DNA of 64,000 bases from Basidiobolus meristosporus CBS 931.73. Taxonomy: Eukaryota; Fungi; Basidiobolomycota. The position numbers and the translations under genes were made by a program. The stretch covers positions 62,001 through 126,000 of the forward strand of contig MCFE01000042.1 in assembly GCA_002104905.1 (NCBI GenBank), given 5' to 3'. Within the stretch, counting starts at the first letter, position 1. The number at the start of each line of letters is the position of its first letter. Below the pieces are notes generated by a model. That model was not told the DNA's origin, did no database searches, and worked only from the letters and a program-made list of their open reading frames with translations. This document shows, piece by piece, positions 23,268 to 52,626 of the stretch.

Positions 23268-24240
23268 ATTAGTGTATCTTGAATATACTCAGACTGTCTT
23301 AGGGTGATAGTCTGGGTTCTTCTGTCCATAACTGAGTCCTCATAGATTGGATTTCTTGAACTCTCTAAATAGGCTGGATTTAGTCTCTTCCAATGTATTT
23401 AGGTTATTAGTGGCTATAATTAGATCTTCTACATATAGAGCTATAGGAGTGAAATTGCTCTATCTGGCTTATAATATACACTTTAGTCAGAATTGCTCCT
23501 TTTGAAACTTAAAGATTTCAAATAAGATTCTAGCTGGCAATTCCAGGCTTTTGGTGATTGTATGAGTGCATATAGAGATTTTTTAAGCTTACAGACTAAA
23601 TGGGTGTTATCTTGGTCAACAAACCTATCTGGCTGGTCCTTATACATCTCCTCATCATGCTTTTTGTTCAAAATGCAGTTTTTACATCCATATGATGTAA
23701 TAGAAACTTACATTTGGCAGCAATGCCAACATTGATCTGATGAATTAAACTTGAGTACTGGTGTAGAGGTCTCACTATAGCCAATTCCTTTTGCTTGAGA
23801 GTATCCATTGGCTACAAGTCTTACTTTGTATCTTTTAGCTGTACCATCAATGTTATATTTTGTCTTGATGACCCATCTGCATCCATTTGAATTGCTCTAC
23901 ATTGCTTACTTGACAAAGTCACAAGTCTGATTTTTCATCAGGGCCTGACACTCCTCAGTTGTTGAAGAACTACAAAACCTTGTCTGAGGGCTTTCTAAGG
24001 TCTCTGTTACAATGTGCACCCTTGTTGATATAGAGATTTGGGCTATTTCTGGTCATTTGGATCTCCTGGTTTGTGATTCCAAATTATCACTTCTATGATA
24101 ATGCCAGGCACTGACTCAGACTGAACCATGGTTGTAGAGTCCACCAGATTGATAAAGTGGACTTGAGATCAGATTTTTGTCATCAGCTAAAATAATTTCT
24201 TGGCATATACTCTACACCCAGATATTCTTAGATATTCTTC
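23268..24240 (-). mobile_element. Old copia family-A element, RT segment (continues at 29271-30880 and probably 43919-44388)
   Basis: DQPDRFVDQDNTHLVCKLKKSLYALIQSPKAWN remnant; joined to 29271 across a 4-bp CTTC TSD. Confidence 0.8.
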
Positions 24241-24279
24241 TGTTACAAGTCTTGGTATAAGAGTTGCAGAGGATTAGGG

Positions 24280-27200: not shown

Positions 27201-28936
27201 AGTATTTTAGGCCCAAAACAAGCTGATTTTTCACCAATTGGCTCATTTTCTGTTCCCCTATGTGTCCTAGCCTCCTATGCCACGTCTCCCAGTTGGTTTC
27301 ATCAGTTTCAGCAATGTTGACATACTCAGGTACAAGGATCTTGCATTGTAACTTGTATATATTGTGATCTCTGATTCCCAAAGCCAATTTTTGTCCATTT
27401 TCACTCAATATTGAGCAGCTCAGCTTAGTAAAAACAAATTTCAGTCCCTGAGTAGTTGCTTTACTGACTGAGAGTAGGTTCTTAGCTATTCCAGGTACAT
27501 AGAGTACGTCAGTCAGTTTTGCTGTTGTTGCCCCTGAGTTATCACTCATATTTAGTTGTATAGACCCACTAGCGGTAGCTTCCAATGCAGAGTTATCTCC
27601 CAGATAAACCTTTCTTATGGGAATAGTCTTTAAGTTGCTGAACCAATCCTTTATACCACAAATATGCTGTGATGCTCCAGAGTCAATATACCATTCATTA
27701 CTTTGGTTACTTGCACTCTCTTGTACAGTGACAAATAACTGTTCATCAGTAGTTATATGGTTTGCCTGCTCCAGTTTCTGTTTTTTGTCTGCTTGTTTCT
27801 TCTTGCATTCTCTTGCCCAGTGTCCTGGCTTCTTAGAGTGGTTACAGCAGCCAGGTTTTCTTCGGTTTTGTTGCTTTCCCTTCTTTTCTGTATGCCTTTC
27901 TGAACTGAATAAAGCATTATCTTCAATTTTCTCTGCTTGATCATTATGTCTGAGTTCTTCATGGAGAAGTCTTCCTTTGACATAGTCTAAAGTCAAGTTG
28001 TCTTCTCTGCTTTCAAAAGAAAGTATGAGTGGCTCATACTCGTCTGGTAGGCTGCAAAGCAGACAGAGTATCTTTTCTTCATCATCTACACCAGCATTAA
28101 TACTGTAAAGTTCTTCTGCAAGTGTCTCCATTCTGGTAATGAGTTGTAGCATGTCATCATCTGGCTTTTTTCTCATGTTGAAGAACTTTTGTTTCAAATA
28201 AAGCTTGCTTGATACTGACTTTGCTCTAAAGATCTTCTCTAAGGATTCCCATGCTGCTTTGGCAGTATTTGAGGCATGGATTTGTCCAATGAAGGAGTCT
28301 TGCACATTGATGCATATTGCATTGAAGGCCTTTCTCTCCTTCTCTTGAAACTTCTCCACATCTTCTGCTGTTCCTTTGGGCTCAACTTCCTTTCCTGTTA
28401 CTATGTTCCAAAGCTTTCTTTCCTCAAGGTGGATCTGCATCTTGATTCTCCAAAGTCTGTAGTTCTTCCCATCAAACCTCTCCTTTACAGGGAAGATGTT
28501 GGTATTGCTTTGTTTGCTGGTAGAAGTCATCTTTTAGAATAGATTAAGGCAATCAGGGCTCATAACCTGTTGCAATTTAAGAAGTGATTTGGATATAAGG
28601 AACTTATCAAGAAATAGTGATAATAGTTGAACTGTTGTTTATTCATAAAGAAGCTCAGTATTTATACCTTTGTAGAAGTAATACAGCTGCAACACTAAGT
28701 AGGGAGGGTTTCTCAATATTCAGGAGCATTCTGTAACAGTTTCAGGGTTAGTACATAATGTTTGGTAATAGCGCTAATTTGATCCTGACTATAGGGGAAT
28801 AATAATAAGATCATATATCTAAAGAAAGTGGCAAAGTTAAGGCAGTAAATGAGTCCTACAGTGACTAAGACTAGCCTAGAATTGCTAAGTAAATTTTTAG
28901 CTGCTGAATGATACCAAATAGTCCAATATTTCAACA
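24280..28936 (-). mobile_element. Near-intact Ty1/copia family B, 4657 bp; LTRs 28568-28936 (5') and 24280-24648 (3'), each 369 bp
   Basis: TG..CA LTRs with ~8 differences; 5-bp TSD TAGGG (24275-24279, 28937-28941); PBS GGTTATGAGCCC at 28567-28556; PPT AGTTGAGGGGGAG. Confidence 0.96.
24670..28530 (-). pseudogene. Copia-B gag-pol polyprotein with two in-frame nonsense codons (26899-26901 TGA; 24943-24945 TAG)
   Basis: gag, PR (WYIDSGASQH), IN (VHSDICGP...KVL*SDNGGEY...QQNGVAER), RT (LVLYVDDLII), RNase H (YSDSDWG, ATKEAI*L). Confidence 0.93.
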
Positions 28937-30889: not shown

Positions 30890-33176
30890 TTGAATGAGGT
30901 AGAAATTGGCTTGGGACTGGGTGAAGCCCAGCATACCTTGGTAAAGTTGTCTCAAAACAACTAGTTGCTTGTTGCATCCAACCCAACTCTGCATTTCTTA
31001 ACTGAATACCCACACATTGGGGCTGCTTAGTTTCTTAATGCCAATGACATAGGTGTTTCCATGCCCAAATCTGTCATTGGCATTTTCTAACTCTTCTAGC
31101 CTGTCCTCCATTTGCCAATTCATCACATCCATGAGAGACATAAAGGTAAGATTCTTAATGAGACTGGATATGACAGTACCTGAAAATTGACTTGTCTTCC
31201 TATCTCCCCACACATCCGCTCCATCAGAAACTCCCAAAAGGTGAAGCAAAGCCCAACATTTTCCACTCACCTAGCAAGATGGAGTAGAGAATGAATACAG
31301 TAGCAGCCAAGATCTACACATTCACCTTTATGCTTGCAGTATAGCTGCTCAAATCCTATCACAACCTCCCTTACATAAAAGCTGCTGAGGTGTCAAGTTG
31401 GCATAGGTAATTTGCTTCTGGGTAAATACTCCTACAATGTCAACATATGACTCCCAATGCTTCAAATGTATTCTTGATAGAAATGGCTTGAATGGGCCAC
31501 TAGCATAAATACATATCTAGTTGTTCCAGTCCTTACATTTGCATTCTTGCGTATGAATATGAATATTGATTGGAGCTGGTCTGAAGTACCTTTAGCTGCA
31601 GACACCCTGTAATATATAGCCAACTCTGTAATATCTGGCCAGTTGTTTCAAATTTCCCTGGTATCATAAGGGGCTCATTCAGCTAGAAATACCCCATGTA
31701 CAACTTGGTCATGAATATATGGATATTATTGGAGAGCAAATGCATTGCTCCCAGTGGACAGCTTTTGCTCTAAAAGATACCTCCTCTCTTAAGTAACTCC
31801 AGTTTCTATCTAATTCAATATTCTGGCCAATTGATTATAGGTTGCCAACCTTGCTGAAATTGCATGCTGACTTTGATATGTTCTCTCTGTGGGTAGATTA
31901 TGTTTTTAGTGTTGATGCTTGGTTATTAATATTATGTGAGAGTTATGGAGTAAATCCCTGGGATCCCAAACATTCAACAGCAATACACTACATTGTGCAC
32001 AGAAAAGCCAGCTATCTTTCTGATGGCAGGGGTATCTTCAATGCAGACAATACAATGCGCTTTGATCTAATGGCCATTTAGTGGTATCCCACTGGAAAGC
32101 ATACCAAATTCATCCAGCAATGAATACAGGTATCTGTACAGGTTGGATGGTAATCTAGGCTCAGATATTAGTGAGACCACCATAGATTTCTGCAAAATAC
32201 CATAGGATAGGCAGCAGACCAAGGTTAATGAAAATCAGTGGTAAGCAGGACTTGCCGTTAGAGTACTTGTTCAATGGGAACCGTTCAAGTGCTAAGGCAA
32301 AAACATAGTCAAACATGCCCTAAAAGTAGCCCTTGCTTCTGCGTTGTTTGTAATAATTGCAGTCTAATATATTGAAGATGTTTGTGCTTGATTGATACTG
32401 AGTGCAGTAATATATAGCTTTGCAATATTTATTAGCCAGCATGAACTTCTTTAAATAGGGTGTTACTGGAACATATCCAAAGTGTGATCAATGTTTTCCT
32501 CCTTTGGTGGTGGATTCATGACAAGTTGCACACCTTGCAATGATGATATTTTCTGATGTGAATATCATGAAGCTGTTAACACATGCCAGTATCAGTGCAG
32601 CCTCTAGATCATATGTTGCCAGCCTCATGACAGCTGTCCATTTGTACTATGCAGATGGTAAGTTGCATCCTGGAATAATTTTTACAAGGGGTAGGTGTAA
32701 ATCTCAGGCCCCCGTTACTGATATTTGTGGAAACACGCCACTTCACTAGCCACAACATCACATCAGTCACCAGCAAATGGTGTGCTGGGCTCACTTGGTG
32801 CCATAAAGTCTCCTTGGTGTTTTTTCTGCAGTCTTTGTCTCAATGCATATTGGGATTTGGCTGGGCTCATACAGCAATACTGTTGTTAGAGGAGATAGGC
32901 TCAGAATCCATTAGTAAGCCTTCTTCTTCAGAGCTATCACTCTGTGTGCCATATTCATAAGGCTGAGATGAGCCTAAAAGCTTTGTAAACTCACCTGACT
33001 CAGTTTGTGCAAGGTGAAAGCATGGGCAAATAACTTGTGTAGAGTAACCATTATCCCAGGTAGGGAATATATTATATTTGCTGCAATGAAGGAACTTGAG
33101 TAGCTCAGTGTCACAGCCAAGAGTTGAGCCATTTCCAGTATAACAGTAGAGGAAAACTGTATGGTTTTTGAAGCTC
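30890..33176 (-). mobile_element. Decayed CACTA-like transposon, copy 2 (inverted relative to copy 1); continues at 38115-38304 after the gypsy-1 insertion
   Basis: Reverse-complement similarity to 17.9-18.2 kb and 19.0-20.6 kb; flanks of gypsy-1 rejoin to read VSQPRVEPF..MVFEA|HQQYPKMK..PIAAWEG, homologous to ORF 16621-17046. Confidence 0.8.
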
Positions 33177-36100
33177 TGTTATGATCTGCCGCTTGAATGT
33201 TTAAGTTAGATCAGTTTTTAGTCAAATCAATTAGTATATGTTTAGGTTATCAGTATATCAGTATTATCTATGAAATCAGTAGCATTAGTCAGCAAATGAA
33301 TCAGCAGATCCTTATCAGACAGAAAAAGATATATTAAGTAGGATCTTATTGGGTGATGATGATGCAATCAAATGAGTCATCAGCCACAACCTACATTAGG
33401 AAATACAATTAGTCAGCAATTGATCTGGCAAAATGTATATAAGGAGCTGCTGGAACCTCAATAAAAATCAGTTCAAGTTTTAGTGAATACAATACTAGCT
33501 AAACTCCCTATTCCTCTACAACTCTTATACCAAGACTTGTAACATTGGTAGCAGCGATAACCAGAAACCTCCCTCCTGAAGAAAGAAGAAAACACCCTCA
33601 AGATGTCGGACAATCAAGAATGGAAGAATGCCATGCAGCAAATCCTGGCCCAACAGCAACAGCTACTCCAGATCCTCAGCCAACAGCAACAAGGAATGAC
33701 TACCATGGCTCAGAGCCAGCAAAGCCCTATCAAGAGCAACTTTAGTGTGAAGGTCAACCGGTACCATGGCAGAGTCAATGAAAACCTGGGAACTTGGCTC
33801 TTTCAGATTGAAGAAGCTTTTAAAGCTAAAGGAATTGCTCCAGAGAGCAAGTTGCATTATGCAGCTTCTTACCTGGCAGATGCAGCTTTACAGTGGTACC
33901 ACAACAAGATCAGGTCAGCTACTATGATGGGATGCTCTACAATCTCTACCTGGGATGAGTTTGTGTCGGAAATTCAGGATGCTTTTGAACCTCCACACCA
34001 GCAGACACTACTAAGAAGGAAGTTAAAGACACTCAGACAGAAAGGAATGGTGCAAGAATACATCTATGAGTACAGATGTCTACTTGGACAAATTGAAAGA
34101 ATGGACCCCTTGGATCAAGTTGAATACTTTATTGATGGGTTGAAAGAAAGAACTCGCAAGGAAGTCAATTACCGAAGACCTCAGACTATTGAAGAAGCCA
34201 TCAAGATTGCCATTGACTATGACTCAGCTATGTTTGGAGTTGGGAAGCCTACAGTGACTAGTCAGAAAGGCTATAATCATTATGAAAGAAGACAATCAGA
34301 AGCAGTACCAATGGAAATAGACGCTATGCAGAAGAATCCCTCCTCAGAAGAATGCAAGAAGAGAGGACTTTGCTTTAATTGCCACCAGCAGGGACATATT
34401 GCAAAATACTGCCCTCAGAGAAGAAATGGACACCAGCCAACAAGAACCTTCAACCATATTGAATCCCATGAACACAATAATGAGGAAGATGAGCTTGAAG
34501 AAGACTCGGAACTCACCTTCCATATGACAGAAGAGTACTTGTCCCAAATGACTTCAAACTCAGGGAAGTTATTGTACCTGAATGGAGCAATCAATGGAGT
34601 ACCTGCCAAGATCATGATTGACTCAGGAGCATCGCATGAGTACATGTCAGAGCAATTTGCTTTGAAAGCTGGAATCAACTCGGAACCTACCAAATCAACT
34701 TCAGTCTCCACAGCAGATGGGAACTCCCACATAATCAACCGTATTACCCAGCCAGTAAGAATGAAGATCAATGACTATGAAGAAGACCTACAGGCTTATA
34801 TATTTGGGAACTGCAAGTTTGACCTTGTACTTGGGAAAACCTGGCTATTTTGTCGTAATCCATCAATCAACTGGAGAACCCATGCTACTCAGATCCAAAA
34901 AGACAACAAGACCTATGAGCTATTACCTGCCAGGCTGGATTTCAACTTGGTCAATTCCAGTGTGTGTGAGACAAGTGAACTTAGCAAGACCCAGTTCTGT
35001 AGAGCACTTAGAAAAGGTACCCAGATGTTCCTCATGGCGGTATTACAGGAGGATTCCTCTATCCCAGCACCCCAGCAGGTCCAGACTCTCTTGAAGAAAT
35101 ATTCAGACGTGTTTCCAGATGAGCTTGTAAGCCTACCACCAGTCAGAGACGTGGATCATGCCATTGACACAGGAGATAGCCCTCCAGTGAGCAAGACACC
35201 TTACAGAATGAGTCCATTGGAATTGGAGGAAATGAAGAAACAAATTGATCAGCTATTGGAGCAAGGATACATCAGGCCCAGCAAGTCACCTTGGGGAGCA
35301 CCAGTGCTTTTTGTGAAAAAGAAGGATGGAACACTTAGGATGTGCATTGACTACAGAGCCCTGAACTCAGTTACCGTCAAGAATAAGTACCCCATACCTC
35401 GGATTGATGAGCTTTTGGACCAACTTAATGGAGCCACTATTTTCAGCAAGATCGACCTCATGTCAGGATACAACCAGATTAGGGTGAAACCAGAAGATAT
35501 CCCTAAGACAGCATTCAGGACCAGATATGGACATTACGAGTACTTAGTCATGAGTTTTGGCCTCACTAATGCCCCTGCAACATTCATGACGCTGATGCAG
35601 ACTGTCTTTCAGGAGTACTTAGACAAGTTTGTGATAATCTACCTGGATGACATATTGATATACAGCAAGACAGAAAAGGATCACATGGTGCACATTGAAA
35701 AGGTCTTGAAGAAACTAAGAGAGAACAAGCTATACGGCAAGCTAGCCAAGTGTGAATTCTTCAAGGAACACGTAGAATATCTGGGACACATAGTGACTAG
35801 CACAGGAGTAACCTTAGACCCCAAGAAGGTGGAAGTAATCAAGAATTTGAAGCAGCCCCATAGCATATCAGAACTCAGATCCTTCCTTGGAATGGTTTCC
35901 TATTATCGGAGATTTGTCAAGTCATTTGCAAGTATTGCAGCCCCTTTAACTGATATCCTCAAGAAAGAGAATACCTACAAGTGGGACATAGCTTGTGAGA
36001 CTGCCTTCCAGACGCTAAAGAATGAACTTGCTAAGTTACCAAGCTTAAGAATACCAGACTTCAGAAAAGAGTTCACTCTATGCACAGATGCTTCAGATTA

Positions 36101-38114
36101 TGCAATTGGTGGAGTGCTGAGCCAAGAACACGAGGGAAAGGACTACCCTGTTGCCTTTGAATCCAAGAAACTGAACTCAGCAGAACAAAACTATCCAGTC
36201 CATGAGAAGGAGATGCTTGCTATAATACACTGTTTGAAGACATGGAGATGCTATATTGAAGGAGTCAAATGCACTGTGAAGACTGATCATGCCTCCCTCA
36301 AGTATATATTTACTCAGAAGGTACTCTCTAGAAGAATGACAAGATGGAGTGAATACATTCAGCAATTTGACCTGGAGATTGTCTACTGCCCTGGAAAAAA
36401 CAACACGGTTGCTGATGCCTTATCAAGATTAGATCAAGTTGCACAACTCAACTTGGTGCATGAATCAGATTGGCCTAGCCTATTACCAAAGTACTTGGAG
36501 GACCAAGCCATTCCTAATGAGGTGGATGAAGATATCAAGAAGATAATCCGGGATGAAGCCAGCAAATTTGTTGTACAGGATGAAACACTCTACCGAATTG
36601 TTGATGGAAGCCCTATTGCCTATTGTCCTTATGTTGCTCGCCTGGATTTAATACATAAGCTACACAATGGATATGGACATCTTGGGATTGAAGGAACCTA
36701 TAGCCTTGTAAAAGCCAGAGCATGGTGGCCCAGAATGAAACAAGACATTGAGAAGCTAGTAAAAACATGCCCAAACTGCCAAATCAATCAAGGCCAGCCA
36801 CAAAGAATTGCCGAACTCTTCCCTTTGGAGCCTGTAAGACCATTTGAGAGATGGGGAATTGACTTTATTGGAAGACTGCCAACTACCAGGAAATGTAACC
36901 GTTGGATCCTAGTAGCTATTGACCATGCCACTAAATGGCCAGTTGCTAAAGCCGTACCAATAGCCAGTGAACAAGAAGTTGCAAGTTTCATTTACCATGA
37001 GATCCTGATGAAGTTTGGATGCCCTGTGGAGATCTTATCCGATAGAGGTGCAAACTTTATGGCAAAGACATTAGAGGCTTACCTGGAAATGCAGCAGATC
37101 AGACACTTGAAAACCTCGGCATATCACCCCAGAACTAATGGAGTCACTGAGCGGTTTAATGGATTATTTGGAAAAATGCTGACTAAGTATGCAAATGGAG
37201 TTGTCAGTAGATGGGATGAGTATATAGACCAAGCACTCTTTGCATGCAGAGTCAGAGTACACAACACCACCCAGCAATCACCATTTTACTTAGTTTATGG
37301 ATGTGAACCTAGGATTCCAGGAGATCTCACACAACCCAAGCTTACAGATGCCTTAGAAGATGAACTTAGTCAGCCAAGTAGACACCAGCAACTGGAACAA
37401 AGACGTCAAGAGGCACAGACCAAAGTATCTCAAAGTGCAGAAAAGATGAAGCAGAGATTTGATAAGACTATAGCACCAGAAGCATTGACAGTTGGGAACT
37501 TTGTATTGCTAAGAAACAACACTCGGAAGAAGTTTGAGCCACAATGGACAGGACCATTCAAGATCATCAGAGAATGTCCATTTGCAACTTACCAACTGGT
37601 GGACAAGCAAGGTAATATCCGGGAAGACTTAGTGCATAGGGACAGACTCAAGCTTGCAAGACTTGCTGATAATACTGAACCATCAAGATATTGGTATCAC
37701 AAGAAAAGAGATTCAGGAGAACTCTCTCAACTTTAGTAGGGGAGAATGTTATGATCTGCCGCTTGAATGTTTAAGTTAGATCAGTTTTTAGTCAAATCAA
37801 TTAGTATATGTTTAGGTTATCAGTATATCAGTATTATCTATGAAATCAGTAGCATTAGTCAGCAAATGAATCAGCAGATCCTTATCAGACAGAAAAAGAT
37901 ATATTAAGTAGGATCTTATTGGGTGATGATGATGCAATCAAATGAGTCATCAGCCACAACCTACATTAGGAAATACAATTAGTCAGCAATTGATCTGGCA
38001 AAATGTATATAAGGAGCTGCTGGAACCTCAATAAAAATCAGTTCAAGTTTTAGTGAATACAATACTAGCTAAACTCCCTATTCCTCTACAACTCTTATAC
38101 CAAGACTTGTAACA
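33177..38114 (+). mobile_element. Intact Ty3/gypsy LTR retrotransposon (gypsy-1), 4938 bp; LTRs 33177-33544 and 37747-38114 (368 bp)
   Basis: No LTR differences found by eye; 4-bp TSD GCTC; PBS TGGTAGCAGCG (33546-33556, initiator-Met-tRNA-like); PPT AGTAGGGGAGAA. Confidence 0.97.
33603..37736 (+). CDS. Single-ORF Gag-Pol polyprotein (1377 aa): gag+CCHC, protease, RT, RNase H, integrase with GPF motif, no chromodomain seen
   Basis: [14 protein letters not shown]; MIDSGAS; IYLDDILI; TDASDYAIG; HNGYGH..CPNC; WGIDFIG..SDRG..TER; WTGPFKI. Confidence 0.96.
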
Positions 38115-38370
38115 GCTCATCAACAGTACCCAAAAATGAAGCTCAGAGTAAAACCTATTGCAGCCTGGGAGGGAACAACTGTGGTGATTATATCCAATCC
38201 TGGAAATCAAAAGACATTGACAATTTGTGAAGCCATTGAGTGAAGCAATGAAGAGCTGTGTAATCACCAAGTGACCTTCAGAAGTCTAGCATGGCATCAG
38301 CTTAAGCACAGTACAACTTGCAGCACTGGCATTAGCTAATTCTAGCTGTGGGCACTTTATGGTACCCAAC

Positions 38371-38802
38371 TCAGCAGCAGTCATCATAGCAATCATCCCA
38401 GCATGGGTCACAGCAATCATCATAGCAAGGATCATAGCAGGGATCACAGCATGGATCACAGCAGGGATCACAGCATGGGTCACAGCAAGGATCACAGCAA
38501 GGATCACAGCAAGGGTCACAGCAAGGATCACAGCATGGGTCACAGCATGGGTCACAGCAGGGATCACAGCAGTCATCATAGCAGGGATCATAGCAAGGAT
38601 CACAGCAGGGATCCCAGCAATCATCATAACAAGGATCATAGCAGGGGTCACAGCAATCATCATAGTCATAGTATGAGTAGCCTCTCTTCTGAACTTTGCT
38701 GGTACCTGCATCTGCCTGACCATGGGGAAGGGAGAGTGTGGTTCCAAGGAAAAGAACACCAACAACAGTGGCCAGTGAGAGATTGCTGAAAGAGAACTTC
38801 AT
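38371..38802 (-). CDS. Secreted Cys/Asp/Pro-rich repeat protein, copy 1 (143 aa from ATG at 38802)
   Basis: Hydrophobic signal peptide, KR at residues 39-40, then GYSYYDYDD + 23 C-[CYW]-D-[PD] units + CC; intronless. Confidence 0.75.
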   Translation of the reverse strand: MKFSFSNLSLATVVGVLFLGTTLSLPHGQADAGTSKVQKRGYSYYDYDDCCDPCYDPCYDDCWDPCCDPCYDPCYDDCCDPCCDPCCDPCCDPCCDPCCDPCCDPCCDPCCDPCCDPCCDPCYDPCYDDCCDPCWDDCYDDCC

Positions 38803-38977
38803 TTTAACTAAGAGAAAGAGATGAGTTTTTATAGGAATACCACTAATGAGTTGAGGCAAGATAGGATGATGCTATACCAGTGGTGACCATTTGGACTTAA
38901 ATACTTTTTCTCCTTGCCAGTCATCTCCACTAACAGAGCCTCAGATATGTTTCTATGGCACTGTGATCACTATAGAC

Positions 38978-39053
38978 CCATCAGTAAATCAGGCCCAGCT
39001 GCCATCAGTAAATCAGGCCCAGCTGCCATCAGTAAATCAGGCCCAGCTGCCAT
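38978..39053. repeat. Perfect 24-bp tandem triplication CCATCAGTAAATCAGGCCCAGCTG
   Basis: Three consecutive identical units plus CCAT. Confidence 0.95.
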
Positions 39054-39566
39054 GCTATCTCTATGATTGTTTTGTTAGCCCACCTAGGTATTATCAGATT
39101 TGCCATGAGATCTATCAGTAGTGATGTCTGGCAGTTGGGTTTAGAGCTGGGCCTTAGTGCTTCAGGTGCAGGGTTCCATTCCCACAAGCTCCATAATTCT
39201 GGCAGAAATGAAGGTCAAGTCAGTGATGTAAAAGTAGGCTGGTTTGCAAGAATATTTTAAACCACAGATTCATTTTTGTTGCCCAGACCCAAGTAAAAGC
39301 TAGTGTAGGCTGACTAACCCTAAACAGCAGCTTTCTTTTTTGTACTCCACTTGTTTATGCCCTGATGATGGGAGAGTGCTTGATAAATAAGAGCCACATG
39401 CTGATCCCTGAAATCACAATCTATCATATATACATATCAGCTAACAAGAGTGACTTTATTCAAAATTGCAGACATTGAGTAATTTAGGTGATGCAAAACC
39501 AGCACAGTACAACTTGCAGCACTGGCATTAGCTAATTCTAGCTGTGGGCACTTTATGGTACCCAAC

Positions 39567-39998
39567 TCAGCAGCAGTCATCATAGCAATCATCCCAGCAT
39601 GGGTCACAGCAATCATCATAGCAAGGATCATAGCAGGGATCACAGCATGGATCACAGCAGGGATCACAGCATGGGTCACAGCAAGGATCACAGCAAGGAT
39701 CACAGCAAGGGTCACAGCAAGGATCACAGCATGGGTCACAGCATGGGTCACAGCAGGGATCACAGCAGTCATCATAGCAGGGATCATAGCAAGGATCACA
39801 GCAGGGATCCCAGCAATCATCATAACAAGGATCATAGCAGGGGTCACAGCAATCATCATAGTCATAGTATGAGTAGCCTCTCTTCTGAACTTTGCTGGTA
39901 CCTGCATCTGCCTGACCATGGGGAAGGGAGAGTGTGGTTCCAAGGAAAAGAACACCAACAACAGTGGCCAGTGAGAGATTGCTGAAAGAGAACTTCAT
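39567..39998 (-). CDS. Secreted Cys/Asp/Pro-rich repeat protein, copy 2 (143 aa)
   Basis: Same sequence as copy 1; upstream TATA-like CTTAAATA (~40050-40057) and downstream AATAAA (~39456-39461) on the minus strand. Confidence 0.8.
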   Translation of the reverse strand: MKFSFSNLSLATVVGVLFLGTTLSLPHGQADAGTSKVQKRGYSYYDYDDCCDPCYDPCYDDCWDPCCDPCYDPCYDDCCDPCCDPCCDPCCDPCCDPCCDPCCDPCCDPCCDPCCDPCCDPCYDPCYDDCCDPCWDDCYDDCC

Positions 39999-40219
39999 TT
40001 TAACTAAGAGAAAGAGATGAGTTAATCATAAAGTATTCTGTTGTAACTCCTATTTAAGGTATACCACTGTGGCAGCTGATTTTGCCCATGAGTTACAGGA
40101 TAATCTTAAATCATGGATCATAGAACTCATCATATCAATCATTGATTTGATTGCTCATTCTTCCACTCCATTTAACAATGGGGAGCAGAGCTTAGTGTAT
40201 CCTGCATTATCCCATACGT

Positions 40220-43200
40220 TTTGCTGATGTGGATGAAGAGTCTTGAGGTGGTAAAGTACTCAAGGTTCTTGTGGTCACCAAAGATCTTTATCTTTTAGGC
40301 TGCACCATCAAGGTAGTGTCTCCATTGTTCAAAGGCAACAATGATTGCAAGTAGTTCCTTATCATAGATATCTTAGTTTACCTCAGCTGGAGTAAATATT
40401 CAGGAGTAGAATGCAATAGGGTGTAGTACATTCTTATCATTGTACTGGGGAAGGATTGCACCAAGTGCAAAGTCAGAGGCATCAGCTTCTATGATAAATG
40501 GTTTCTCAAGGTCAGGGTGAGTAAGCAGGGGAGTGTACAGGAAGGATTTTGTGATGGAATTAGAGGACTTGGACTGTTCCTCATTCCAGGCAATGGGCAG
40601 ATTCTTCTGGGTGAGCATTGTCAACAGAGTGACTATTCTGGAGTAGTTGGCAATAAATCTACACTAGAAGTTGGCAAATCCAATGAAGGACTGCACATCT
40701 TTTACGGAACAGGGAGTTTTCCACAGCCAGATGGCTTCTACTTTCTTGGGGTCCATTCTTGTTTCATTTGAGCTGACAAGATAACCTAAGAACTCAATTT
40801 CTTTCTGGTCAAGCTCACATTTCTACAGTTTGGCATAGAGGCCAGCTGTGTCAAGTTTGGTCAAGACTTTCTTGACATGAGGGTTATGTTCTTCTTGGGT
40901 CTTGGAGTAGATCAAGATGCCATCAGGGTAGATAACCACAAATTGGTGAAGGTATTCATGGAATATGTCATTCATCAGGTGTTGAAAGACAGCTGGGGCA
41001 TTGGTGAGACCAAATGGCATAACTTTATACTCAAAATGACCATATCTTGTTCTGAATGCAGTTTTCCATTCATCACCAGGCTTGATCTTGACAAGGTTAT
41101 ATGCTCCTCTGAGGTCAATCTTAGTAAATACTTTGGCAACAGAGAGTTGATCCAACAGGGTGTTGATCAGGGGCAAAGGGTACTGGTTCTTGATTGTGAT
41201 CTTATTCAGTGCACAGTAGTCTACACACATTCTTAGAGTACCCTCCTTTTTTTTGACACAGAGGATTGGGGCACCAGCTGGGGACTTGGAGTGCTGAATA
41301 AAACCTTTCTGGAGGTTTTCTTGAATATAGCCATGGATTTCTTTCAACTTGGGTTGCAAGAGGTTGTAAATAGGACCAAAAGGTGGGGATTTTCCTTCTT
41401 CAAGGTTGATGGGACAATCATAGGGTCTATGGGCTGGGAGTAGTTTGGCTTTCTTCTTGTCAAAGACATGGGCAAACTCTTGATATTTGGCAGGTATTCC
41501 ATTGGAGGGGGTTCCTTCAGTGATGATGGGCTCCTGAGTCTGGGGTAGCTTAGGAAAGGATACTTCTTTACCTGAAAAATCAGGTGGTTTCATGGAGTTG
41601 ACATGGTGGATTCTGGGAATGTCAGGATTTTGGTCTTCCAGTTGATAGCTGGGTTATGGTGACTAAGCCATGAGCTTCCAAGGACTATGGAGTAGTGGGG
41701 AGAGTTGATGATGTTGAAGGCTAGTGTTTTGTGGTGGCCAGTACTGGACAGCTGGAGTAGACATGTCTCATGAGTAACAGCACTGGAAGAGAGGGACCTT
41801 CCATCAATAACTTCTACTTGGACAGGACAGGATTTCAGGACAGTGGGGATTTTGTGCTTCTGGACAAATGACTGGTCAATGAAACAGGAGGAAGCACCAG
41901 AATCTATGAGGGCAAGGACACAGACAGGGCTGGATTCAGGGAGGTGGATGTTGACAGGCATTTTTAAGGACTGGATGGACTTGGTAGTGTATGATGTTTC
42001 TTGAATGTGCTGTATTTTCATTGGAGGTTCCAGTTGCAAGCCTGTCATTGTTACTGGACATGGGAGTTTCCTGATAATTTGGGTGAAGATTGTTTACAGG
42101 ATGATTGCAGGAGCTTGAAGCTGGACTTCTTGTTAGGACAAGACTTAGCAAAGTGGCCTGGCTGGCCACAGTAAAGGCAGAGGTTTGCCTGCTGATGTCT
42201 AAATCTTTCTTCTTTTGTGAGTTTCTTATATTTAGCACTGTCAATTTGCATAGGATCATCAGGCTTAGTATTGGGTGACTGGATTACTGGGAAGGAGGTT
42301 GGCTGATAAGTATGTTGGAATTTCAGTTTCTTCTGGAAAAGACAATAGTCACATTGGATTACTTGATGCATAGCTTCACCCAAGGTGGTTGGGTCATGGA
42401 GAGTGAGAAGTAGGTCACTGACTTCATCATTAAGCCTATCTTGAAATTGACTAACCAGGGCAGCGTCACCCCAAAGGGTCAAATCACTGGCTAGTAGCTG
42501 GAATTCAGAAGCATACATGGATGCAGGTCTGTTTCCTTGCTTCAAGCTCTTGATCTTGTTGGCAGCAGTTCTGGCTTGGTCAATGTTGCCAAATGTTAGC
42601 TCCATTTCTTTGAGGAAGGCATGGTAGTTGCTGAGTAGAGCAGAGTTGGTTTCCACCAAAGTGGAGAACCATTTCTGGGCAGCTCCAGTCAGCAGGTTAG
42701 AGATATAACTAACTTTTGCTTGATCTGTTGGGAACCAATTGGGTTGTAGTGACAAGTGGTTTTTCACTATGCTGATGAAGCCTTGGAATTCATTCTGGGA
42801 GCCATTGAGCTTGGTAGTGGAAGTGATCTTGGGATCATGGTAGGAGGGAGCCTGGATAGGCTGTTGAGCATTTTGGCTCTGGAGCTGAGCAACAGAGTTT
42901 CTGAGGGCTGCATTGTCTTGTTGCAGCCAGGCAAAGGCAGCCATGAGACTTGCAAAGTTAAACTCTGGGCTGGACATGTCCTGGTAGCAGGAGGCAGAGA
43001 AGTCTCTGGGACTTGTTCAGGAATACTGGATATTGCTAGCTAATTTGTGGTTATAAAGCCACTAGTTTGTCAAGAATACAATTATTGAGCCACAATCCCC
43101 AACTTTGAATAAGTTAGCATCACTTCAGAAGGTACTGGCTTTAATGTTCTTTGATAGAGTATTGTACTAAAGCTTCCAATACTGTAACAACTGTAAACTA

Positions 43201-46395: not shown

Positions 46396-47553
46396 TTATT
46401 TCATCTTCTTGGATAACTTGGCCTTCTCCGCCTCTTGCTTCTTGCGGTAGTTCTTGTACTTGATGTCGGTACCGAAGAGATGGTCCCAGATACGGAAGGA
46501 GGATGCGTAGTTGTTGACGAAGAACTGGTGATGGTAGTCGTGATGATCGGCACCTAGGGATGGGGGGTTAGGATGGGCGGGGGAGGAAGGTTCGTGTGAA
46601 GGCCATGCTTACCACTCCAGATGGGGCACCAGTGACGTGCGGAGAAGGGGAAATCGTATCCAGAGTGGGAGTCGACTGCCTGGATCAAACGACCGGTCAT
46701 CCACAAAAGAACGGTGACTACGTGGAGATCGCCGGTGCACAAGATCCAGATAAGTGGGCCACCGAAGGTTCCCATGGCGAGAAGCATGGTTTCGGCGGGG
46801 TGGGCGTATTCAGCAGCCTACACGGGTGGCGATCAGCAAGGTGACTGGAATTCCTGGAAATCTCCGAAACTTACCAAACCGAAGGGGGCGGTGAACTCGT
46901 GGTGAACCTTGTGGATGTACTTGTAGAAGAAGCCCCAATGGAAGAGACGATGGGCCCAGTAATGGTAGAAATCTTCGAACAAGAAGAACCACATCAATTG
47001 GATGGCCATTTGGAAGCTGGGCGGAAGGATTAGTCATCGGGGACGGGGACGTGGACGAGCAGTGATGCGACAACTTACAGGCTGGGGAAAGGATCGGTGA
47101 TCTTCATGCCAAGAAGCTCGGCACCGGGGTGGAAAGCGAGGATCATGGGGAGTTGGACGAAGTGGTTCTGAATGAGAACGCTCTTCAAGCATTTCCAACG
47201 CAGGGCACTGGTAACCGGTTTGTTCTGGTAAACGAAGGAATTTAGCCCGGCGTGGAGGGGGGCGTCTCGCACAACGCGTACTTACAGGCTGGATCTTGTA
47301 CTTGTCGCAGGCGGGAATGTGCTCAGCGATCCAGAATGGCACGTAGCGTCCATAGTAGAAGAGCTGATGACTGATGAAGGTGACCGCGGCGAGCACTACG
47401 GCAGGGTTGTTCCCTTCGAATAGAGACAGCCACCAGGACTCGAAAATGTTGGGCTGGTAATCAGAGATCACGGTGGTTCCGTTGAACGACCTTCAAGACA
47501 TTATTAGCACTGTGGGTAAAGGCAAGAGCTGCATCACAGAAAAGAACCTACAT
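46396..47553 (-). CDS. ERG25: C-4 methylsterol oxidase (fatty acid hydroxylase superfamily), multi-exon
   Basis: His boxes [19 protein letters not shown]; [19 protein letters not shown]; start codon inferred to be split by intron 47551-47491. Confidence 0.9.
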
Positions 47554-48330
47554 CGTAGAGAGTGTGCCGAGAGAAGATGTACGGGAACGAAATTCCTCGT
47601 GATCTTCTTATAAGAAGAATCCATCGAAAGGCCAGACTGGCCGATGGAATGGAGCGTTTCCTGTTAGGGAAGATGGCAATATCAGCTTATGCTTGGCAGA
47701 ACCGAACACTGTACCGGCAACAAATATTTCAAGGAATGCAGCGATCAAGATACTACGAGCCGCCGTTACCTGTTTCAGAAAGCCTCACGATTCAAAGCCG
47801 ATCCATCCTCTAATGCACTGTATCGCGAGGCAAGGAGAGCTGTTAGTTTCTCGGCCTTGGATCTAGACGTGAGTCGGCTATACTTGGCCTCATCAACAAT
47901 ATGATAATGACCCAAATGGGCGGGCTGATTGGGCCAATTAAATTGGCGTGATCGCATACAATGCACAACCAAATTCCAGGATCACCTAACCAACAGCTTG
48001 CATGGATTACTCTTGATTACTTATTTAACGACCACTCTCTTTGGTCTGGATTTCCTGGCAATGGGCCCTTCCGGATATCTTTCGGTAGGGCAAGTGCCGG
48101 GGACAAACAGTCGTATTTATAATCACTTGGCAGTCACCACTCCAAGTGCCGTCAAATATATCAATGCCTACGTTCTAGATGCTCCCCAGGTTAGCCTTAG
48201 TCGTGCACTAGATTCGACTTGATTCTTTATTATAGCTACAAGGGAAGAAAGGCTTAACAGCAAGCTTTACACAAATTGAACAGATCTTGGTGACTGGGAT
48301 GGCATCAAAACAGTGGCTGTGGGCACGAAG

Positions 48331-50174
48331 TTAGGGATCCTCGGTCTGCCTGCTGGATGGGAGATAGGAGGAGTATCGCTTGGAATTGGCTGGACTGCGC
48401 TGCTGCTCCCCACTCACACCCGCTCGGTAGAGTTGTCTAGGCGCCATCGACGTGGGGCGCTCCATACGTCTCCTGTTTATCCAGGTTTCCAAATCAACCT
48501 CGGAGTCGGATGGTTTGGGTTTGGCGTATTTCCCGTTTGGATTCTTGGCAATAGGGTACATATCCTCCGGGAAGACAGTGTCTACGTACTCGATGCAGAG
48601 GCGAACAATACTTCCGACTGTTCCACCTCCTACTGTGCATAAGGAAACGTCTACCAGAGGGTTTCCGCTGCGCACAAGGTTCGGGGACCAAACTACGGCT
48701 AGATTGTATGGCGTCATGAGATTTATGGAGCTCTTGGCAGAGATATCACTCATGAGCCGGAATATTTGTACAAGTAGCAGGAGCATGGGCTTGGAAAGGT
48801 GTGGGAAAATGTTGCGTCGAATGTACTGAATAGACTCCATGTCATTTCCACAGCTTCCCATCTCTCGAATCAGCTCGTAAATGTCTGCAGGGAACGCCGG
48901 TGTGGGTAGCTCCCGGAAAAACATCTTTAACAAGACCGCGGCGACATGAATCCCGTAGTCGTCCAGATTTAATGAATTGCCTGCAAGGGGTTCAATTAAC
49001 GTTCACACCGGATTCAAGCGGCGGTCTACCTACCTCGATTGTATATCTCTTTGGCCTCTTTCAGCGACCTTGAGGCCGGCGAGCGTCGGAATATACCCTC
49101 CACCTCAATTCCTGGCATATGAAATCTCAATACTCCCGCACCGTCAAGTACTCGTGGAAACACAACAAACCATTGACTCTTATAAACTCTATACAGTCGC
49201 AGAAGAACTCCGGCAACCCCAGTTCACCTTCCTGGCCCATCATAGTCTCTATTGGCACGCCGAAAGCTTGCGGCGTAAAGGAAGTCTTGTCTTGATTAGA
49301 AGGAACAATAATCTGAGATTCAAATTGGAAATTGAACCTGACAAACAATCGTGACACGTTAGCACCACCAACAGAAATGGGTAAACCCACTGAGACATCT
49401 TACTCGTAAACGGCATCCGGTATTTGAATTTGCTGGATCGGTACATAGCTAGCCAACTTTGATAAAGTTTCAACGTAGACCACTTTTTTGGCGAACTTCG
49501 GGCTGCTGAAATCGTTAGTATGGAGCGTGAAGGATTCTTATGTAGAAAGGCCAACCTGACTACGACGTTCATCATGTCCAGAATAAGTCGGGGCCAGCGC
49601 GAGGGATGGACTACATAAAGATTCTTGAGATTCTTTTTGTATCTAAAGGCGCGGTTAGTTCCTCTTGTCATTCGGTTACAGGTGCTGACCAAGAAACGGG
49701 CTTACTTTCGGCTAAGCTTGCTGTACGCTTTGAATAACCAGACCCAACTTGGGCGGTACGTGGCACCGCCAGAAAATAGCACCACGGTATAATCACTCTC
49801 AACGAACTGATCGAGCTTTGCCAGGATCAGACTAGAATTTAAAGAAACTCGCGGGTTTAAAAGAAGTGATGCATATGGGTGTGAGAGAACCAGTGGAACA
49901 TACGCGAGCATCTGATCGTAATCAACAACTTTCGGGTTTGGTAAGCTACAGGCGCTGAATACCAGCATAGGTTTACTTTCAAGGTCAACACCTGTTGTTT
50001 GGTGCAAGGTGAGTATCGGAATAAGACAGCTTGGATAGTTCTTCGGCTACCTGACTGGTATATGATCTTCGTGTTGACCAGCTCTGAAAGCTCTTCATCT
50101 GATTGAGCGTTGAGTGCTGAGCTACTGCTACTGGAAGCAAAAGAGCGTAGCCCACTGAAACTAAACCCACTCAT
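48331..50174 (-). CDS. BCH/CRAL-TRIO (Sec14-like) + RhoGAP protein (ARHGAP1/Ecm25-like)
   Basis: VDLESKPMLVFSAC..LDQFVESDYTVVLF..YKKNLKNLYVVHPS; RhoGAP FGVP.., EGIFRRS, LLKMFFRELP, NLMTPYNLAVVWSPNL. Confidence 0.88.
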
Positions 50175-50954
50175 ACTATCGAAAGGATCTTGAGTGTCCT
50201 GCGGATGATTGTAGGTTGGTTGAAAGGAGTTTAGAGGCGAAAACAAACTTGAGGGACGACCTGATCGTAAGTATACTACAAACTTAACTATTGTGCGATC
50301 AAGTTGACATAGCTAAACGCATTAGTTGTTAATAGGAGCATAAATCGGTGGGACCCAACGCAGAATCGAAATGTAAATAAAGGAAAGGTTAAATGGATCA
50401 ACTGGGTTTAGGTATGATCGTGGTATTGGATAATCACACCATGTTCGTGCGATCATTAATAGCGCAACGCTTGTAGAACACTGGTAGTACCTATGTCTTA
50501 CTTGATATTAGTAAACAACCGTGGATGAAAATGTAGACGGGATGAAGACGGTCCGAATATTTATCCAATCCTTTCGTTTCTCACATCTTATAGAAATGTA
50601 ACTATTACATATGGCTAGTCATTGCTGGTAATACCAATGATGATGGCAGCTGGTAAATCGCCCAATTCCCCTATCTCACCTCGTAGCCAATGCCCAGTAT
50701 CCAAAAACATGAATCACACAGAGAAAGCGCTACGGCAAAGGATGAGCACCAGAGATGTGATGGAAGTAATTAGATTTAGCCTCTAGCAGAAGTTAATGTT
50801 GCACAAGGGTTTCTTGTTGGTCATAGGGATCCCGGGATTGGATGATGGCACAAACATAAGGTTAGGTTTAAGTTTGGGGTAGCGTACCCAGAATAATATA
50901 AAGCCACGCAGCGTGTCCATGTCAAGCACCTGCTGGCACTCGACTTCCATCATT

Positions 50955-52287
50955 ATGCCAAACGTGAGTGATCCGGAAAAATCGGACGAGTTTCAATCTG
51001 AGAAGTTAACCCTTGATGAGGATTCTAAACTCGACGTTCCTCCAGAAGGTGGCTATGGATGGGTGGTGGTGCTTTCGAGCTTTCTAATCCACTTTGTCGT
51101 TCTCGGCGTCCAATACTCCTGGGGTATTTATCAGCAGTATTACCTATCACACACCTTTGCTGGTCGCGTGAAAGCTTCGTCACTATCGTTGGTTGGGACT
51201 ATCGGTGCTGCTGCCATGCCCATATGTGGCATCGTGACTGGCCGATTGGCAGATAGGTACGGGTTTAAACTCATCGCTTTTTGCGGAACAGCAACCCTCA
51301 CCTTAGGCCTGATACTTGCCTCCTTTGCAAAGGAATTATGGCACCTGTACCTTACTCAGGGGCTGTTGTATGGAGTTGGCAGCTCTCTATGCTTCTTCCC
51401 CGCAATCAGCGTCCCATCACAGTGGTTTAAGCAGAGGCGTGGATTGGCAGTGGGTATTGCTGTCTCCGGCTCAGGTATAGGCGGATTGGCTTTGGGCCCA
51501 GCCACCGACAGGCTGATCTCAAGCTTGGGCCACCAATGGGCTCTACGGGTTACTGGAATCTTCTCGTTTGTACTGCTTAGTGTAGCATGCATCCTCTTGC
51601 GAACCAGAGCCAAGACCAAGGTGAACAGCCCAATCATTGACGTAAAGTTATTCAAAAACCCAAAATTCATCATCATGTGCCTTGGTGGAGTGACATTTAG
51701 CTTTGGCTATCTGATCCCCATGTACTATATTCCTGACTACGCTTCGTCCATCAGCCTTTCGGCCAGCTCTGGTGCTCTGATAGTTGGGCTCCTGAACGGC
51801 GCCTCCGCCTTGGGTCGAGTGTTGCTTGGCACGGCGGCGGATAGATTTGGCCGGCTGAACCTTCTGGTGTTCTGTATGCTGGTTGGATCCTTGTCCACCC
51901 TGATTATCTGGCCGAATGCGGGCTCTTTTGCACCGCTTCTGATCTTTGCTCTCCTGTTCGGGTTCACCGCAGGCGGGTTCATCAGCTTGTTTCCGGTGGT
52001 GATTGCTAATATATTCGGTAAGTGGAGCATACAGTGAGTTTCAGTGATGATTCGTGGTAACACAAGCCTCTCTAGGGTTGGAGAATCTCGCCACAGTGAC
52101 TGGCCTGGTTTATGCGTCCACGGGTGTTGGGAACCTCGCTGGGTCGCCCACAGCAGGCGCGCTTCACGATAGCACCTCTGACTATCTGCCTGTGATCTTA
52201 CTCTCGGGCGTTACGATGGTATTCGGTACGCTGGTCAACTTTGGGTTGCGTATGATGGTCGAGAGGAAGTTGTTCGCAAAAGCCTAG
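50955..52287 (+). CDS. MFS transporter, MCH/monocarboxylate-porter family (one intron near 52018-52076)
   Basis: PPEGGYGWVVV, GRLADRYG, QWFKQRRGLAVGIAVSGSGIGG, GRVLLGTAADRFGRLN. Confidence 0.92.
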
Positions 52288-52626
52288 AATTCAGTGAATA
52301 ATACGTGTATATAATCCATTAATAAAGTTCTGCTACTCCTGCCTTGAGGATTGTTCTATGTATCCATAATAGGATGACCGGAAGTTTCCTACACAATGGC
52401 GATAATAAATCAATCCAGCTAGCAAATCCAGCTAGCACAGTATAATTAAGGAGGAAGAAAAGGGGATCTGCTTGCTTGCTTTCAACTCCCGACCCAATCG
52501 ATAAATACTTGTCATCTGGCATTATTTACCCCGCGTTCTCTTATCGAACTTTTATACAACCTGTGCTCCCTTTACGCTTCGTACCTTCCCACAACGTTTG
52601 ATCGCTTTGTTTGCGTCTTGTAGAAT

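Follow-up and report, generated by a model that had tools for sequence, protein, structure and literature searches.

Two identical open reading frames for a small, predicted secreted and cysteine-rich protein lie close together in the 64-kb window analysed here (MCFE01000042.1:62001-126000 of Basidiobolus meristosporus CBS 931.73), and the question they raise is whether they are a self-contained pair of genes, as the initial annotation took them to be, or part of something larger. Both are where it had placed them, on the minus strand at 38371..38802 (copy A) and 39567..39998 (copy B); each is intron-less, is 432 nt long including the stop codon and encodes the same 143 amino acids. There is no third copy of the gene in the window.

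Structure and surroundings of the locus

The two genes lie in segments of 523 bp (38305-38827 and 39501-40023) that are 100% identical at an offset of 1196 bp and that consist of 25 nt before the ATG, the coding sequence and 66 nt past the stop codon. Between them is a 673-bp spacer (38828..39500, minus strand), found once in the window, which comprises the native 3' flank of copy B and the native upstream region of copy A. Gene segment, spacer and gene segment together (38305..40023, minus strand, 1719 bp) amount to 1.44 units of a repeat that is 1196 bp long and arranged head to tail, and the sequences that flank this array piece on its left and right bear no relation to each other. Copy A keeps its native upstream spacer and its native 3' flank ends at +66; copy B keeps an AATAAA 107 nt past its stop codon (39455..39460, minus strand) and its native upstream sequence ends at -25. 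Neither local copy is a complete native unit. The "tandem pair" of the initial annotation is thus correct in that there are two identical copies, but the locus is a broken-off array piece and not a self-contained effector pair, and its interpretation as a piece of an array from a multi-copy family is very probably right. It is extremely unlikely that the local duplication is an artefact of long-read assembly within a repeat; the perfect identity of the two segments and the repeat-rich surroundings are what such an artefact would give, but the outer flanks of the two copies differ, and contigs from runs X1 and X2 span both inner junctions (38518-39007 and 39024-39666), the latter being weak evidence since the assembly was probably built from these very runs.

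On its left the array piece adjoins a truncated older repeat, here called repeat X (38115..38304, plus strand; 79-82% identical to minus-strand positions 16791-19184), which resumes at 32505-33176 beyond a young gypsy-type LTR retrotransposon (33177..38114, plus strand) that has inserted in it beside the array piece. The gypsy element has identical 368-bp LTRs, a GCTC target-site duplication and an intact 1377-aa ORF. The right border of the array piece is unrelated sequence, and the whole piece sits in a nest of transposons. The idea that the array piece had itself inserted into one copy of repeat X was rejected, as the left flank continues X and the right flank has no significant match to it. 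A RhoGAP gene is a neighbour of the locus.

Several candidate control elements can be read from the sequence. A putative promoter element, TATAAAAA, is found 24-31 nt 5' of the copy A ATG (38826..38833, minus strand), and a second TATA-like sequence, TATTTAAG, which may have a similar role, about 95-102 nt 5' of it on the same strand; copy B carries ATGATTAA at the position that matches TATAAAAA of copy A. Farther upstream, 176-251 nt 5' of the copy A ATG, Tandem Repeats Finder reports 3.2 copies of a 24-bp unit (38978..39053), which may be a reiterated control element or no more than a minisatellite. No AATAAA occurs within 460 nt downstream of the copy A stop codon, because the native flank stops 66 nt past it. 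Rfam and tRNA scans of 37500-41000 gave no match.

Copy number, base composition and reading frame

The contigs from X1 and X2, which form small sets (and are probably from the same sample as the assembly), cover the LTR at a depth of 17-92 and one full, permuted unit (38458-39666) at a depth of about 9-12 with 0-5 mismatches. They cross the spacer at a depth equal to that of the gene, and they leave the sequences peculiar to this locus almost uncovered. For X5 and X6, which carry the same species label, C-x-D-P-like contigs have depths of 1,200-10,700 versus 7-24 for single LTR-variant contigs, and the 24-bp repeat reaches summed contig depths of 21,000-27,000 (X5) and 16,700-21,900 (X6); contig depth is not a copy count, and that runs X1-X6 are DNA is our guess. 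From these reads we infer that other parts of the genome carry tens to hundreds of copies of the 1196-bp unit and its diverged relatives. The head-to-tail, high-copy organisation of a satellite is represented here by 1.44 units, with depths that indicate many copies and give no count. Many decayed, satellite-like copies had been named at the outset as the finding that would speak against a pair of genes; the copies are indeed many, but they are not decayed.

The 1196-bp unit contains no CpG where about 59 are expected (none where ~29 are expected in the spacer alone), and in being CpG-free it resembles the surrounding transposons. This CpG-free, transposon-like composition suggests silenced chromatin, and the substitution patterns point to a CpG-methylated, repeat-like compartment as the place where the family lies. 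CpG avoidance accounts for the codon choice, with the protein kept: ahead of GAT the second Cys is invariably TGT, the Asp codon ahead of GAx is GAT, and Pro is never CCG.

The C-x-D-P region is encoded by a 12-nt array (22.8 copies with 80% matches in both genes according to Tandem Repeats Finder) in which all six frames are open, so ORF length alone is no proof of coding; the reading frame is supported by how the units vary, by the architecture of the N-terminus and by relatives that are in frame. Positions 1, 2, 4, 7 and 8 of the 12-nt unit are invariant and all four third positions vary; in the protein, the array shows no changes other than Y or W in place of C at site 2 and D in place of P at site 4. 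A single-base change placed at random in the repeat region has only a 15% chance of being synonymous; among related contigs 10 of the 15 readable variant sites are synonymous (p about 1e-5 if they are independent, which overstates the case given their shared ancestry), and four of the other five are C/Y/W swaps. As originally described, C, D and P are retained while the variation is mostly synonymous, both within the array and among its relatives. Three relatives are in frame in the pro-region (LPHGEASNAG, HGQAANGGS and PHGQASSAGS versus LPHGQADAGTS here), and there are no stops or frameshifts among the units and relatives compared. Such substitution patterns would be those of a protein-coding family under purifying selection, and it seems fairly likely that the gene is truly coding and that its product is made in some life stage. 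If so, purifying selection would here be acting on a gene that resides in a methylated repeat compartment.

That the ORF is no longer expressed, either at this locus or anywhere else, strikes us as distinctly unlikely. The high copy number, the lack of CpG as in transposons, the location in a transposon nest, the loss of one native flank from each local copy and the absence of a gene model from the public collection would all agree with a dead ORF, but the differences among units and relatives are biased to synonymous sites and confined to a narrow residue repertoire, the frame is uninterrupted, the pro-regions of relatives remain in frame, and homogenisation alone does not give a synonymous bias. 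The same bias, restricted residues and in-frame relatives also separate the family from a satellite without coding constraint. The exact look-up in the public collection found no gene model with this product and none for two ATG ORFs in other frames; since the adjoining transposon ORFs are also missing from it, we suspect that repeat masking may be the cause, and masking probably hides the whole family from gene catalogues.

The predicted protein and its resemblances to known proteins

The product begins MKFSFSNLSLATVVGVLFLGTTLS..., and its anatomy is as the initial annotation gave it. A putative signal peptide (about 38731-38802 in copy A and 39927-39998 in copy B, both minus strand) is followed by a pro-region (38683-38730 and 39879-39926) that ends in KR at residues 39-40 and by a mature part of 103 amino acids (38374-38682 and 39570-39878), which consists of GYSYYDYDD, 23 tetrapeptides of the form C-x-D-[PD] (38380-38655 and 39576-39851) and a terminal CC. 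The signal peptide is called by hydropathy and the -3/-1 rule only: the 11-residue Kyte-Doolittle mean rises to 2.46 over residues 8-20, and the predicted cut has small residues at -3 and -1 (T-L-S before LP). The tetrapeptides are 14 CCDP (11 of them consecutive), 3 CYDP, 4 CYDD, 1 CWDP and 1 CWDD. In all, the mature part has 39 Cys, 31 Asp, 18 Pro, 11 Tyr, 2 Trp, 1 Gly and 1 Ser, so that Cys and Asp make up 68% of it, and it contains no Lys, Arg or His and no aliphatic residues. Its predicted mass is 11.7 kDa and its net charge about -32, and it contains 18 Asp-Pro bonds. A single-sequence AlphaFold2 model had a pLDDT of 48 and was set aside. The mature peptide has no trypsin sites, and standard proteomics would therefore miss it. 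If expressed, this would be the product of an orphan, massively amplified gene, with a composition among the most extreme of any natural protein.

The absence of any named family, noted initially, was borne out by the searches. Against 5.8 billion proteins the whole protein gave compositional CCDPC matches only and residues 1-49 gave no match. Exhaustive HMMER against 1.84 billion representatives returned 1363 matches, and among the 22 inspected of the best 150 there was no homologue, all being xxDP or Cys-periodic low complexity. No Pfam family was above threshold (only MSSP, PF03940, at 15.4 bits versus a cut-off of 21.2), and solved structures gave only circumsporozoite NANP repeats (E 1e-13), a compositional match. 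The best ESM Atlas score was 0.67, and its hits are leads only. In a metagenome scan a Tyr-rich junction pattern found nothing and a pattern of four CCDP found 20 ORFs, all unrelated. Metagenomic and bacterial (CCDP)n ORFs (P0002, P0005, L003, L008, L011, L020 and others) resemble the protein in having runs of 4-11 CCDP or CYDPCYDPCWDPC-like strings, but none has an N-terminal signal followed by a single KR, a Tyr-rich start and repeats, and their G+C differs; only P0092 has a Pfam match (bacterial surface-protein domains). They are probably convergent low complexity.

Three better-known groups of repeat proteins bear some resemblance to it. Among 1461 fungal strains B. meristosporus CBS 931.73 ranks first in Kex2-processed repeat proteins (KEPs), many of which are duplicated (PMC7329392). 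Like the KEPs (alpha-factor precursors, Ustilago Rep1), the product here has a putative signal peptide (by the hydropathy and cut-site evidence above), a KR before its repeats and a lineage-specific repeat sequence, but KEP repeats are parted by dibasic sites, whereas here there is the single KR; as there is no K or R past it, the repeats would stay one chain of 103 amino acids. Keratin-associated proteins and Drosophila Mst84D/87F (the MSSP family) share with it a Cys content above 30% in short repeats, of CCxP or CGP type, and are encoded by multi-copy gene clusters and form disulfide cross-linked matrices; they differ in being animal, intracellular, devoid of a signal peptide and not acidic. 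The NANP/NVDP repeats of the Plasmodium circumsporozoite protein share the period of four and the Asn/Asp-Pro ending, and, being strings of Asx-Pro turns, they offer a plausible model of the backbone here. That parasite surface protein has no Cys in its repeats, however, and the match is periodic and compositional and does not indicate homology.

Possible functions of the product

If the protein is made, its signal peptide would come off at about residue 24, and cleavage by a Kex2-type protease after KR40 would free the 103-aa peptide. The latter is probably non-globular, a chain of Asx-Pro turns with Pro at most fourth positions that would display Tyr and paired Cys. So high a gene dosage suggests that the product is made in bulk, and we propose that it is an extracellular polyanion whose Asp and Cys residues bind divalent cations and which may be locked in wall, spore or adhesive material by disulfides (the number of Cys, 39, is odd) and by oxidative coupling of Tyr and Cys. 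Secretomes of Zoopagomycota are characterised by a secreted tyrosinase-domain group (PMC9391592). This bulk, cation-binding and cross-linkable function is the likeliest of those considered but a tentative assignment, about which we are rather doubtful; the explanation as a whole (array piece, coding family and cross-linkable cation-binding polyanion) is the best we have, and we give it an even chance. If the gene is expressed, fungi would have an extracellular material, or a chelator chemistry, of a new kind. A bolder form of it is a long shot: hundreds of gene copies would be kept for a new encoded polymer, poly(Cys-Cys-Asp-Pro), under protein-level selection in methylated repeat-like DNA and expressed at one specific stage of the life cycle only, its product being a redox-active thiol/carboxylate cation sponge, a quinone- and disulfide-tanned spore or adhesive material, or a chain broken at Asp-Pro into tetrapeptides in the acid frog or reptile stomach. 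We know of no described fungal counterpart of such a polymer, and the literature on CCDP repeats and on Basidiobolus expression or secretome offered nothing specific.

A related possibility, which we regard as unlikely, is a heavy-metal chelator like metallothionein, its gene amplified under metal stress but its product sent by the secretory route to the wall, vacuole or medium. The model for such amplification is the CUP1 metallothionein tandem array of Saccharomyces cerevisiae, where copper tolerance tracks copy number (PMC8150848); there as here a small Cys-rich gene lies in head-to-tail units of 1-2 kb, and gene dosage is the apparent point. The mature peptide is 38% Cys (39 of 103 residues) with 14 CC pairs and the terminal CC, beyond the roughly 30% in CC or CxC motifs expected of a metallothionein, and an anoxic gut could leave extracellular thiols reduced. 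But there is no sequence similarity to CUP1, nor a match to any metallothionein family (Pfam gave only the sub-threshold MSSP and HMMER only compositional matches). The CUP1 protein is cytosolic, lacks both a signal peptide and a Kex2 site and is not rich in Asp, Pro or Tyr; the present protein has a hydrophobic N-terminus and a KR pro-region that would route it through the oxidising secretory pathway, and, with its 13 aromatics (11 Tyr and 2 Trp), 31 Asp and lack of Lys, the negative charge of metal-thiolate clusters would go uncompensated. The CpG-depleted, transposon-like DNA of the unit is also unlike a recent adaptive amplification.

The product may instead be a secreted peptide directed at a host or at microbes: an effector, an anionic antimicrobial, or a precursor split by acid at Asp-Pro into PCCD-type tetrapeptides in the host stomach. 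The Asp-Pro bond is acid-labile and there are 18 in the peptide, and a small, predicted secreted, Cys-rich, lineage-specific product encoded in a transposon-rich compartment has the outward marks of an effector. We nevertheless consider this very unlikely, as effector genes do not usually come in tens to hundreds of near-identical copies and there is no complete transcription unit at the locus, copy A ending at +66 and copy B at -25. The initial annotation's analogy with effectors in the transposon islands of pathogenic fungi is not supported, on these grounds and given the absence of CpG, and B. meristosporus is a fungus of amphibian and reptile guts and of soil, not a plant pathogen.

The C-x-D-P protein

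The two minus-strand ORFs of the initial annotation, at 38371-38802 (copy A) and 39567-39998 (copy B), are present with the protein anatomy it described, and they encode identical products of 143 amino acids. The prepro-peptide begins MKFSFSNLSLATVVGVLFLGTTLS; near its N-terminus lies a hydrophobic core, where mean hydropathy reaches 2.46 within residues 8-20, and then T-L-S, an arrangement consistent with a predicted signal peptide. A KR pair (residues 39-40) precedes a 103-amino acid mature part made up, in order, of GYSYYDYDD, 23 tetrapeptides (14 CCDP, 3 CYDP, 4 CYDD, 1 CWDP and 1 CWDD, with a longest CCDP run of 11) and a terminal CC. The mature part consists of C39 D31 P18 Y11 W2 G1 S1, with a computed mass of 11.7 kDa and net charge of about -32. 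The 12-nt repeat that encodes the tetrapeptides is free of stop codons in six of six frames, so ORF length is no evidence for a gene here. The plus strand also carries ATG-initiated ORFs of two types, of 128 amino acids (38403-38789 and 39599-39985; His/Ser/Asp-rich) and 105 amino acids (38359-38676 and 39555-39872; Ile/Ala/Thr-rich); both are by-products of the stop-free repeat, with their variable sites at second codon positions, and an exact look-up found neither product on record.

The earlier remark that the protein belongs to no named family holds in every search made. Pfam gave only MSSP, below threshold; word-indexed protein searches with the whole protein returned only proteins with short CCDPC strings, and those with the N-terminal 49 residues returned no match. 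Each match inspected from an exhaustive HMMER search was xxDP-periodic or Cys-periodic low complexity, and solved structures yielded matches to circumsporozoite protein repeats (NANP/NVDP) alone. An AlphaFold2 model was uninformative (pLDDT 48). Public collections of proteins and genes lack the exact product, and they also lack the transposon ORFs next to it, so repeat masking may explain the missing gene model. Among the public runs listed none was of RNA, which does not prove that there are none. The composition of the protein is unprecedented; tandemly amplified, Kex2-type secreted Cys-rich repeat peptides are a known kind.

A metagenome scan for four consecutive CCDP units found 20 unrelated ORFs, all lacking the order of parts seen in this gene, and the three of these that were scanned matched no Pfam family. 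Small unrelated ORFs with (CCDP)4-6 occur on metagenome contigs with a G+C of about 0.30 (L003:1324-1581 and L020) or 0.35-0.40 (L008, L011 and L012). One group is 86-87 amino acids long, rich in Gly, Tyr and Phe in the middle and hydrophobic in its C-terminal tail, and the other is Cys/Pro/Lys-rich with CCPKKKE repeats; Pfam assigns no family to the L003 and L011 ORFs. It seems that the CCDP motif has arisen several times over.

A CpG-free gene array and its probable coding constraint

The two copies share 523 identical bp (38305-38827 and 39501-40023, offset 1196), comprising 25 nt upstream of the ATG, the coding sequence and 66 nt downstream. This duplicate is no discrete mobile unit but the overlap within a 1719-bp piece (38305-40023) that holds 1.44 units of period 1196. 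In gene orientation the spacer runs from 39500 down to 38828. On the left the piece adjoins a truncated copy of an older repeat, which we call repeat X (32505-33176 and 38115-38304, with an identity of about 80% to 16791-19184 of the opposite strand) and which is split by a young gypsy element (33177-38114) sitting inside it. On the right the sequence turns unrelated at 40023/40024, and from about 40400 onwards there are remnants of gypsy RNase H and RT. Copy A keeps its native upstream region, with putative TATA elements TATTTAAG and TATAAAAA (38833-38826) and 3.2 tandem copies of a 24-bp unit (38978-39053, 176-251 nt upstream of the ATG), all in the spacer; its native 3' flank ends at +66, and no AATAAA-type signal lies within 460 nt. 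Copy B keeps its native 3' end, with an AATAAA in the spacer (39460-39455, 107 nt after the stop), and its native upstream sequence ends at -25, exactly at the TATA element. Each copy lacks part of the native transcription unit.

Evidence on copy number comes from contigs of public sequencing runs placed on 37700-40700. Two tiny contig sets presumed to be DNA, X1 and X2 (0.38 and 0.56 million letters), are probably from the sample behind the assembly. Jointly they contain one full permuted unit (38458-39007 and 39014-39666, with 0-5 mismatches) at a depth of about 9-12; depth is 17-92 over the gypsy LTR, and the stretches peculiar to this locus are almost uncovered, with 0-5 over the repeat X fragment 38115-38305 and none right of 40023. 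Since only repeated DNA is expected to assemble in such small sets, we take the unit to be multi-copy in the strain of origin, its abundance comparable in order to that of a young gypsy family. Two further sets, X5 and X6, derive from a separate sample with the same species label. They were judged to be DNA on two grounds: LTR variants occur by the dozen at similar low depth, and contigs extend past the polyA signal into the spacer. In these, contigs with a similarity of at least 85% to the C-x-D-P region reach depths of 1,200-10,700, against 7-24 for single LTR-variant contigs, and the 24-bp repeat is as abundant as the C-x-D-P-like contigs. Contig depth is not a copy count, and we infer tens to hundreds of copies of the unit and its relatives. 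The 24-bp unit, CCATCAGTAAATCAGGCCCAGCTG, has an E-box-like core, CAGCTG. Summed over contigs, the depth of this unit in X5/X6 (16,700-27,000) is on a par with that of the coding repeats, and it either travels with the gene family or is a widespread minisatellite.

The 1196-bp unit has no CpG against about 59 expected, and the spacer alone has none against about 29. The observed/expected ratio is 0.10 in the transposon nest (10000-46000) and 0.19 in the young gypsy, compared with 0.79-0.86 in the host-gene regions (1-9500 and 46715-64000). Such CpG loss is what CpG methylation with subsequent deamination leaves behind, and these ratios point to a strong footprint of this kind limited to repeats in B. 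meristosporus. The species keeps a CDCA7-family protein, linked to DNA methyltransferases in one study (PMC10538959). The initial annotation had offered, as one reading by analogy, an effector gene pair sheltered in a transposon island; what lies here is instead a broken-off part of a CpG-free gene array that has been amplified.

CpG avoidance also accounts for odd codon usage: the second Cys codon, preceding GAT, is TGT in 14 of 14 units, the site 3 Asp codon is GAT whenever GAx comes next (five of five units), and none of 19 Pro codons is CCG. The synonymous variation first noticed among the units is real. Positions 1, 2, 4, 7 and 8 of the 12-nt unit are invariant across all 23 and the four third positions all vary, yet the site 1 Cys and site 3 Asp never change; second codon changes are G-to-A or T-to-G (Cys to Tyr/Trp), and the remaining amino acid change is a double one, CC to GA, by which Pro becomes Asp. 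By computation, if single bases of the repeat region changed at random, only 15% of the changes would be synonymous, and stops would arise from 6.6%. Among 15 readable variant sites in related X5/X6 contigs, ten are synonymous, four are C/Y/W swaps and one is Asp to Val, a synonymous excess with p ~1e-5 on an assumption of site independence that does not fully hold; read in other frames, the same changes fall at second codon positions. Loose ends of related contigs read, in frame, LPHGEASNAG, HGQAANGGS and PHGQASSAGS, compared with LPHGQADAGTS here, so the start of the pro-region is conserved in the family and the remainder is variable, as is usual in secreted peptide precursors. From these patterns we conclude that the family is probably under protein-level selection now, or was until very recently. 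It appears to have resided long in a repeat-like, probably methylated compartment with its protein sequence kept.

Possible roles of the mature chain

After removal of the signal peptide, a single Kex2-type cut after KR40 would free the mature chain. Pro at most fourth positions would prevent ordinary helices or sheets, and the chain would probably form consecutive Asx-Pro turns like those of NANP repeats. It carries 31 carboxylates, 39 thiols and 11 Tyr; as 39 is odd, at least one thiol must be free or intermolecular. High gene dosage speaks for a product made in bulk and not for a signal or classic effector. We tentatively favor an extracellular cation-binding polyanion that disulfides and Tyr/Cys oxidation would lock into the material of walls, spores or adhesives. 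A hallmark of Zoopagomycota secretomes is a group of secreted proteins with a tyrosinase domain (PMC9391592). The main rival, somewhat less probable, is a secreted metallothionein-like chelator, for which the amplified metallothionein gene CUP1 would be the model; the peptide's aromatic residues, absence of Lys, excess of Asp and secretory route speak against it.

A silenced relic array is a little less probable again: the CpG-poor location raises the chance of silence under laboratory conditions, which does not imply death of the family, and the coding constraint stands on the other side. A host- or microbe-directed peptide, possibly freed by acid cleavage at Asp-Pro bonds, is unlikely. The genus inhabits amphibian and reptile guts, also lives as a saprotroph in soil and litter, and is occasionally an opportunistic pathogen (PMC9391592). 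That the local pair is an assembly artefact is very improbable.

Neighbouring elements

The window is MCFE01000042.1:62001-126000, its stretch 46715-64000 being matched at 100% identity by MCFE01000042.1:108715-130941. Host genes lie at both ends of the window, and about 10-46 kb is a nest of copia and gypsy elements. The young gypsy LTR retrotransposon is apparently active: its LTRs, each of 368 bp, show 100% identity, it has TG...CA ends, the 4 bp GCTC are duplicated at the target site, and a single 1377-amino acid gag-pol ORF (33603-37736) is intact; its LTR variants are very abundant in X5 and X6. Repeat X is unclassified; its 141-amino acid ORF (16621-17046, minus strand) has no Pfam match, and the copy beside the array piece is pseudogenised by an in-frame stop. 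A copia-type element (24943-28530, minus strand) has a 543-amino acid gag/Pol beta-barrel/pre-integrase ORF and a 635-amino acid RT ORF. A gamma-tubulin-complex exon (56715-58400) matches K493DRAFT_297294 of B. meristosporus CBS 931.73. This species has two such paralogues, 99% and 72% identical to the exon, and B. ranarum has two at 86% and 77%, a pairing consistent with large-scale gene duplication in the genus.
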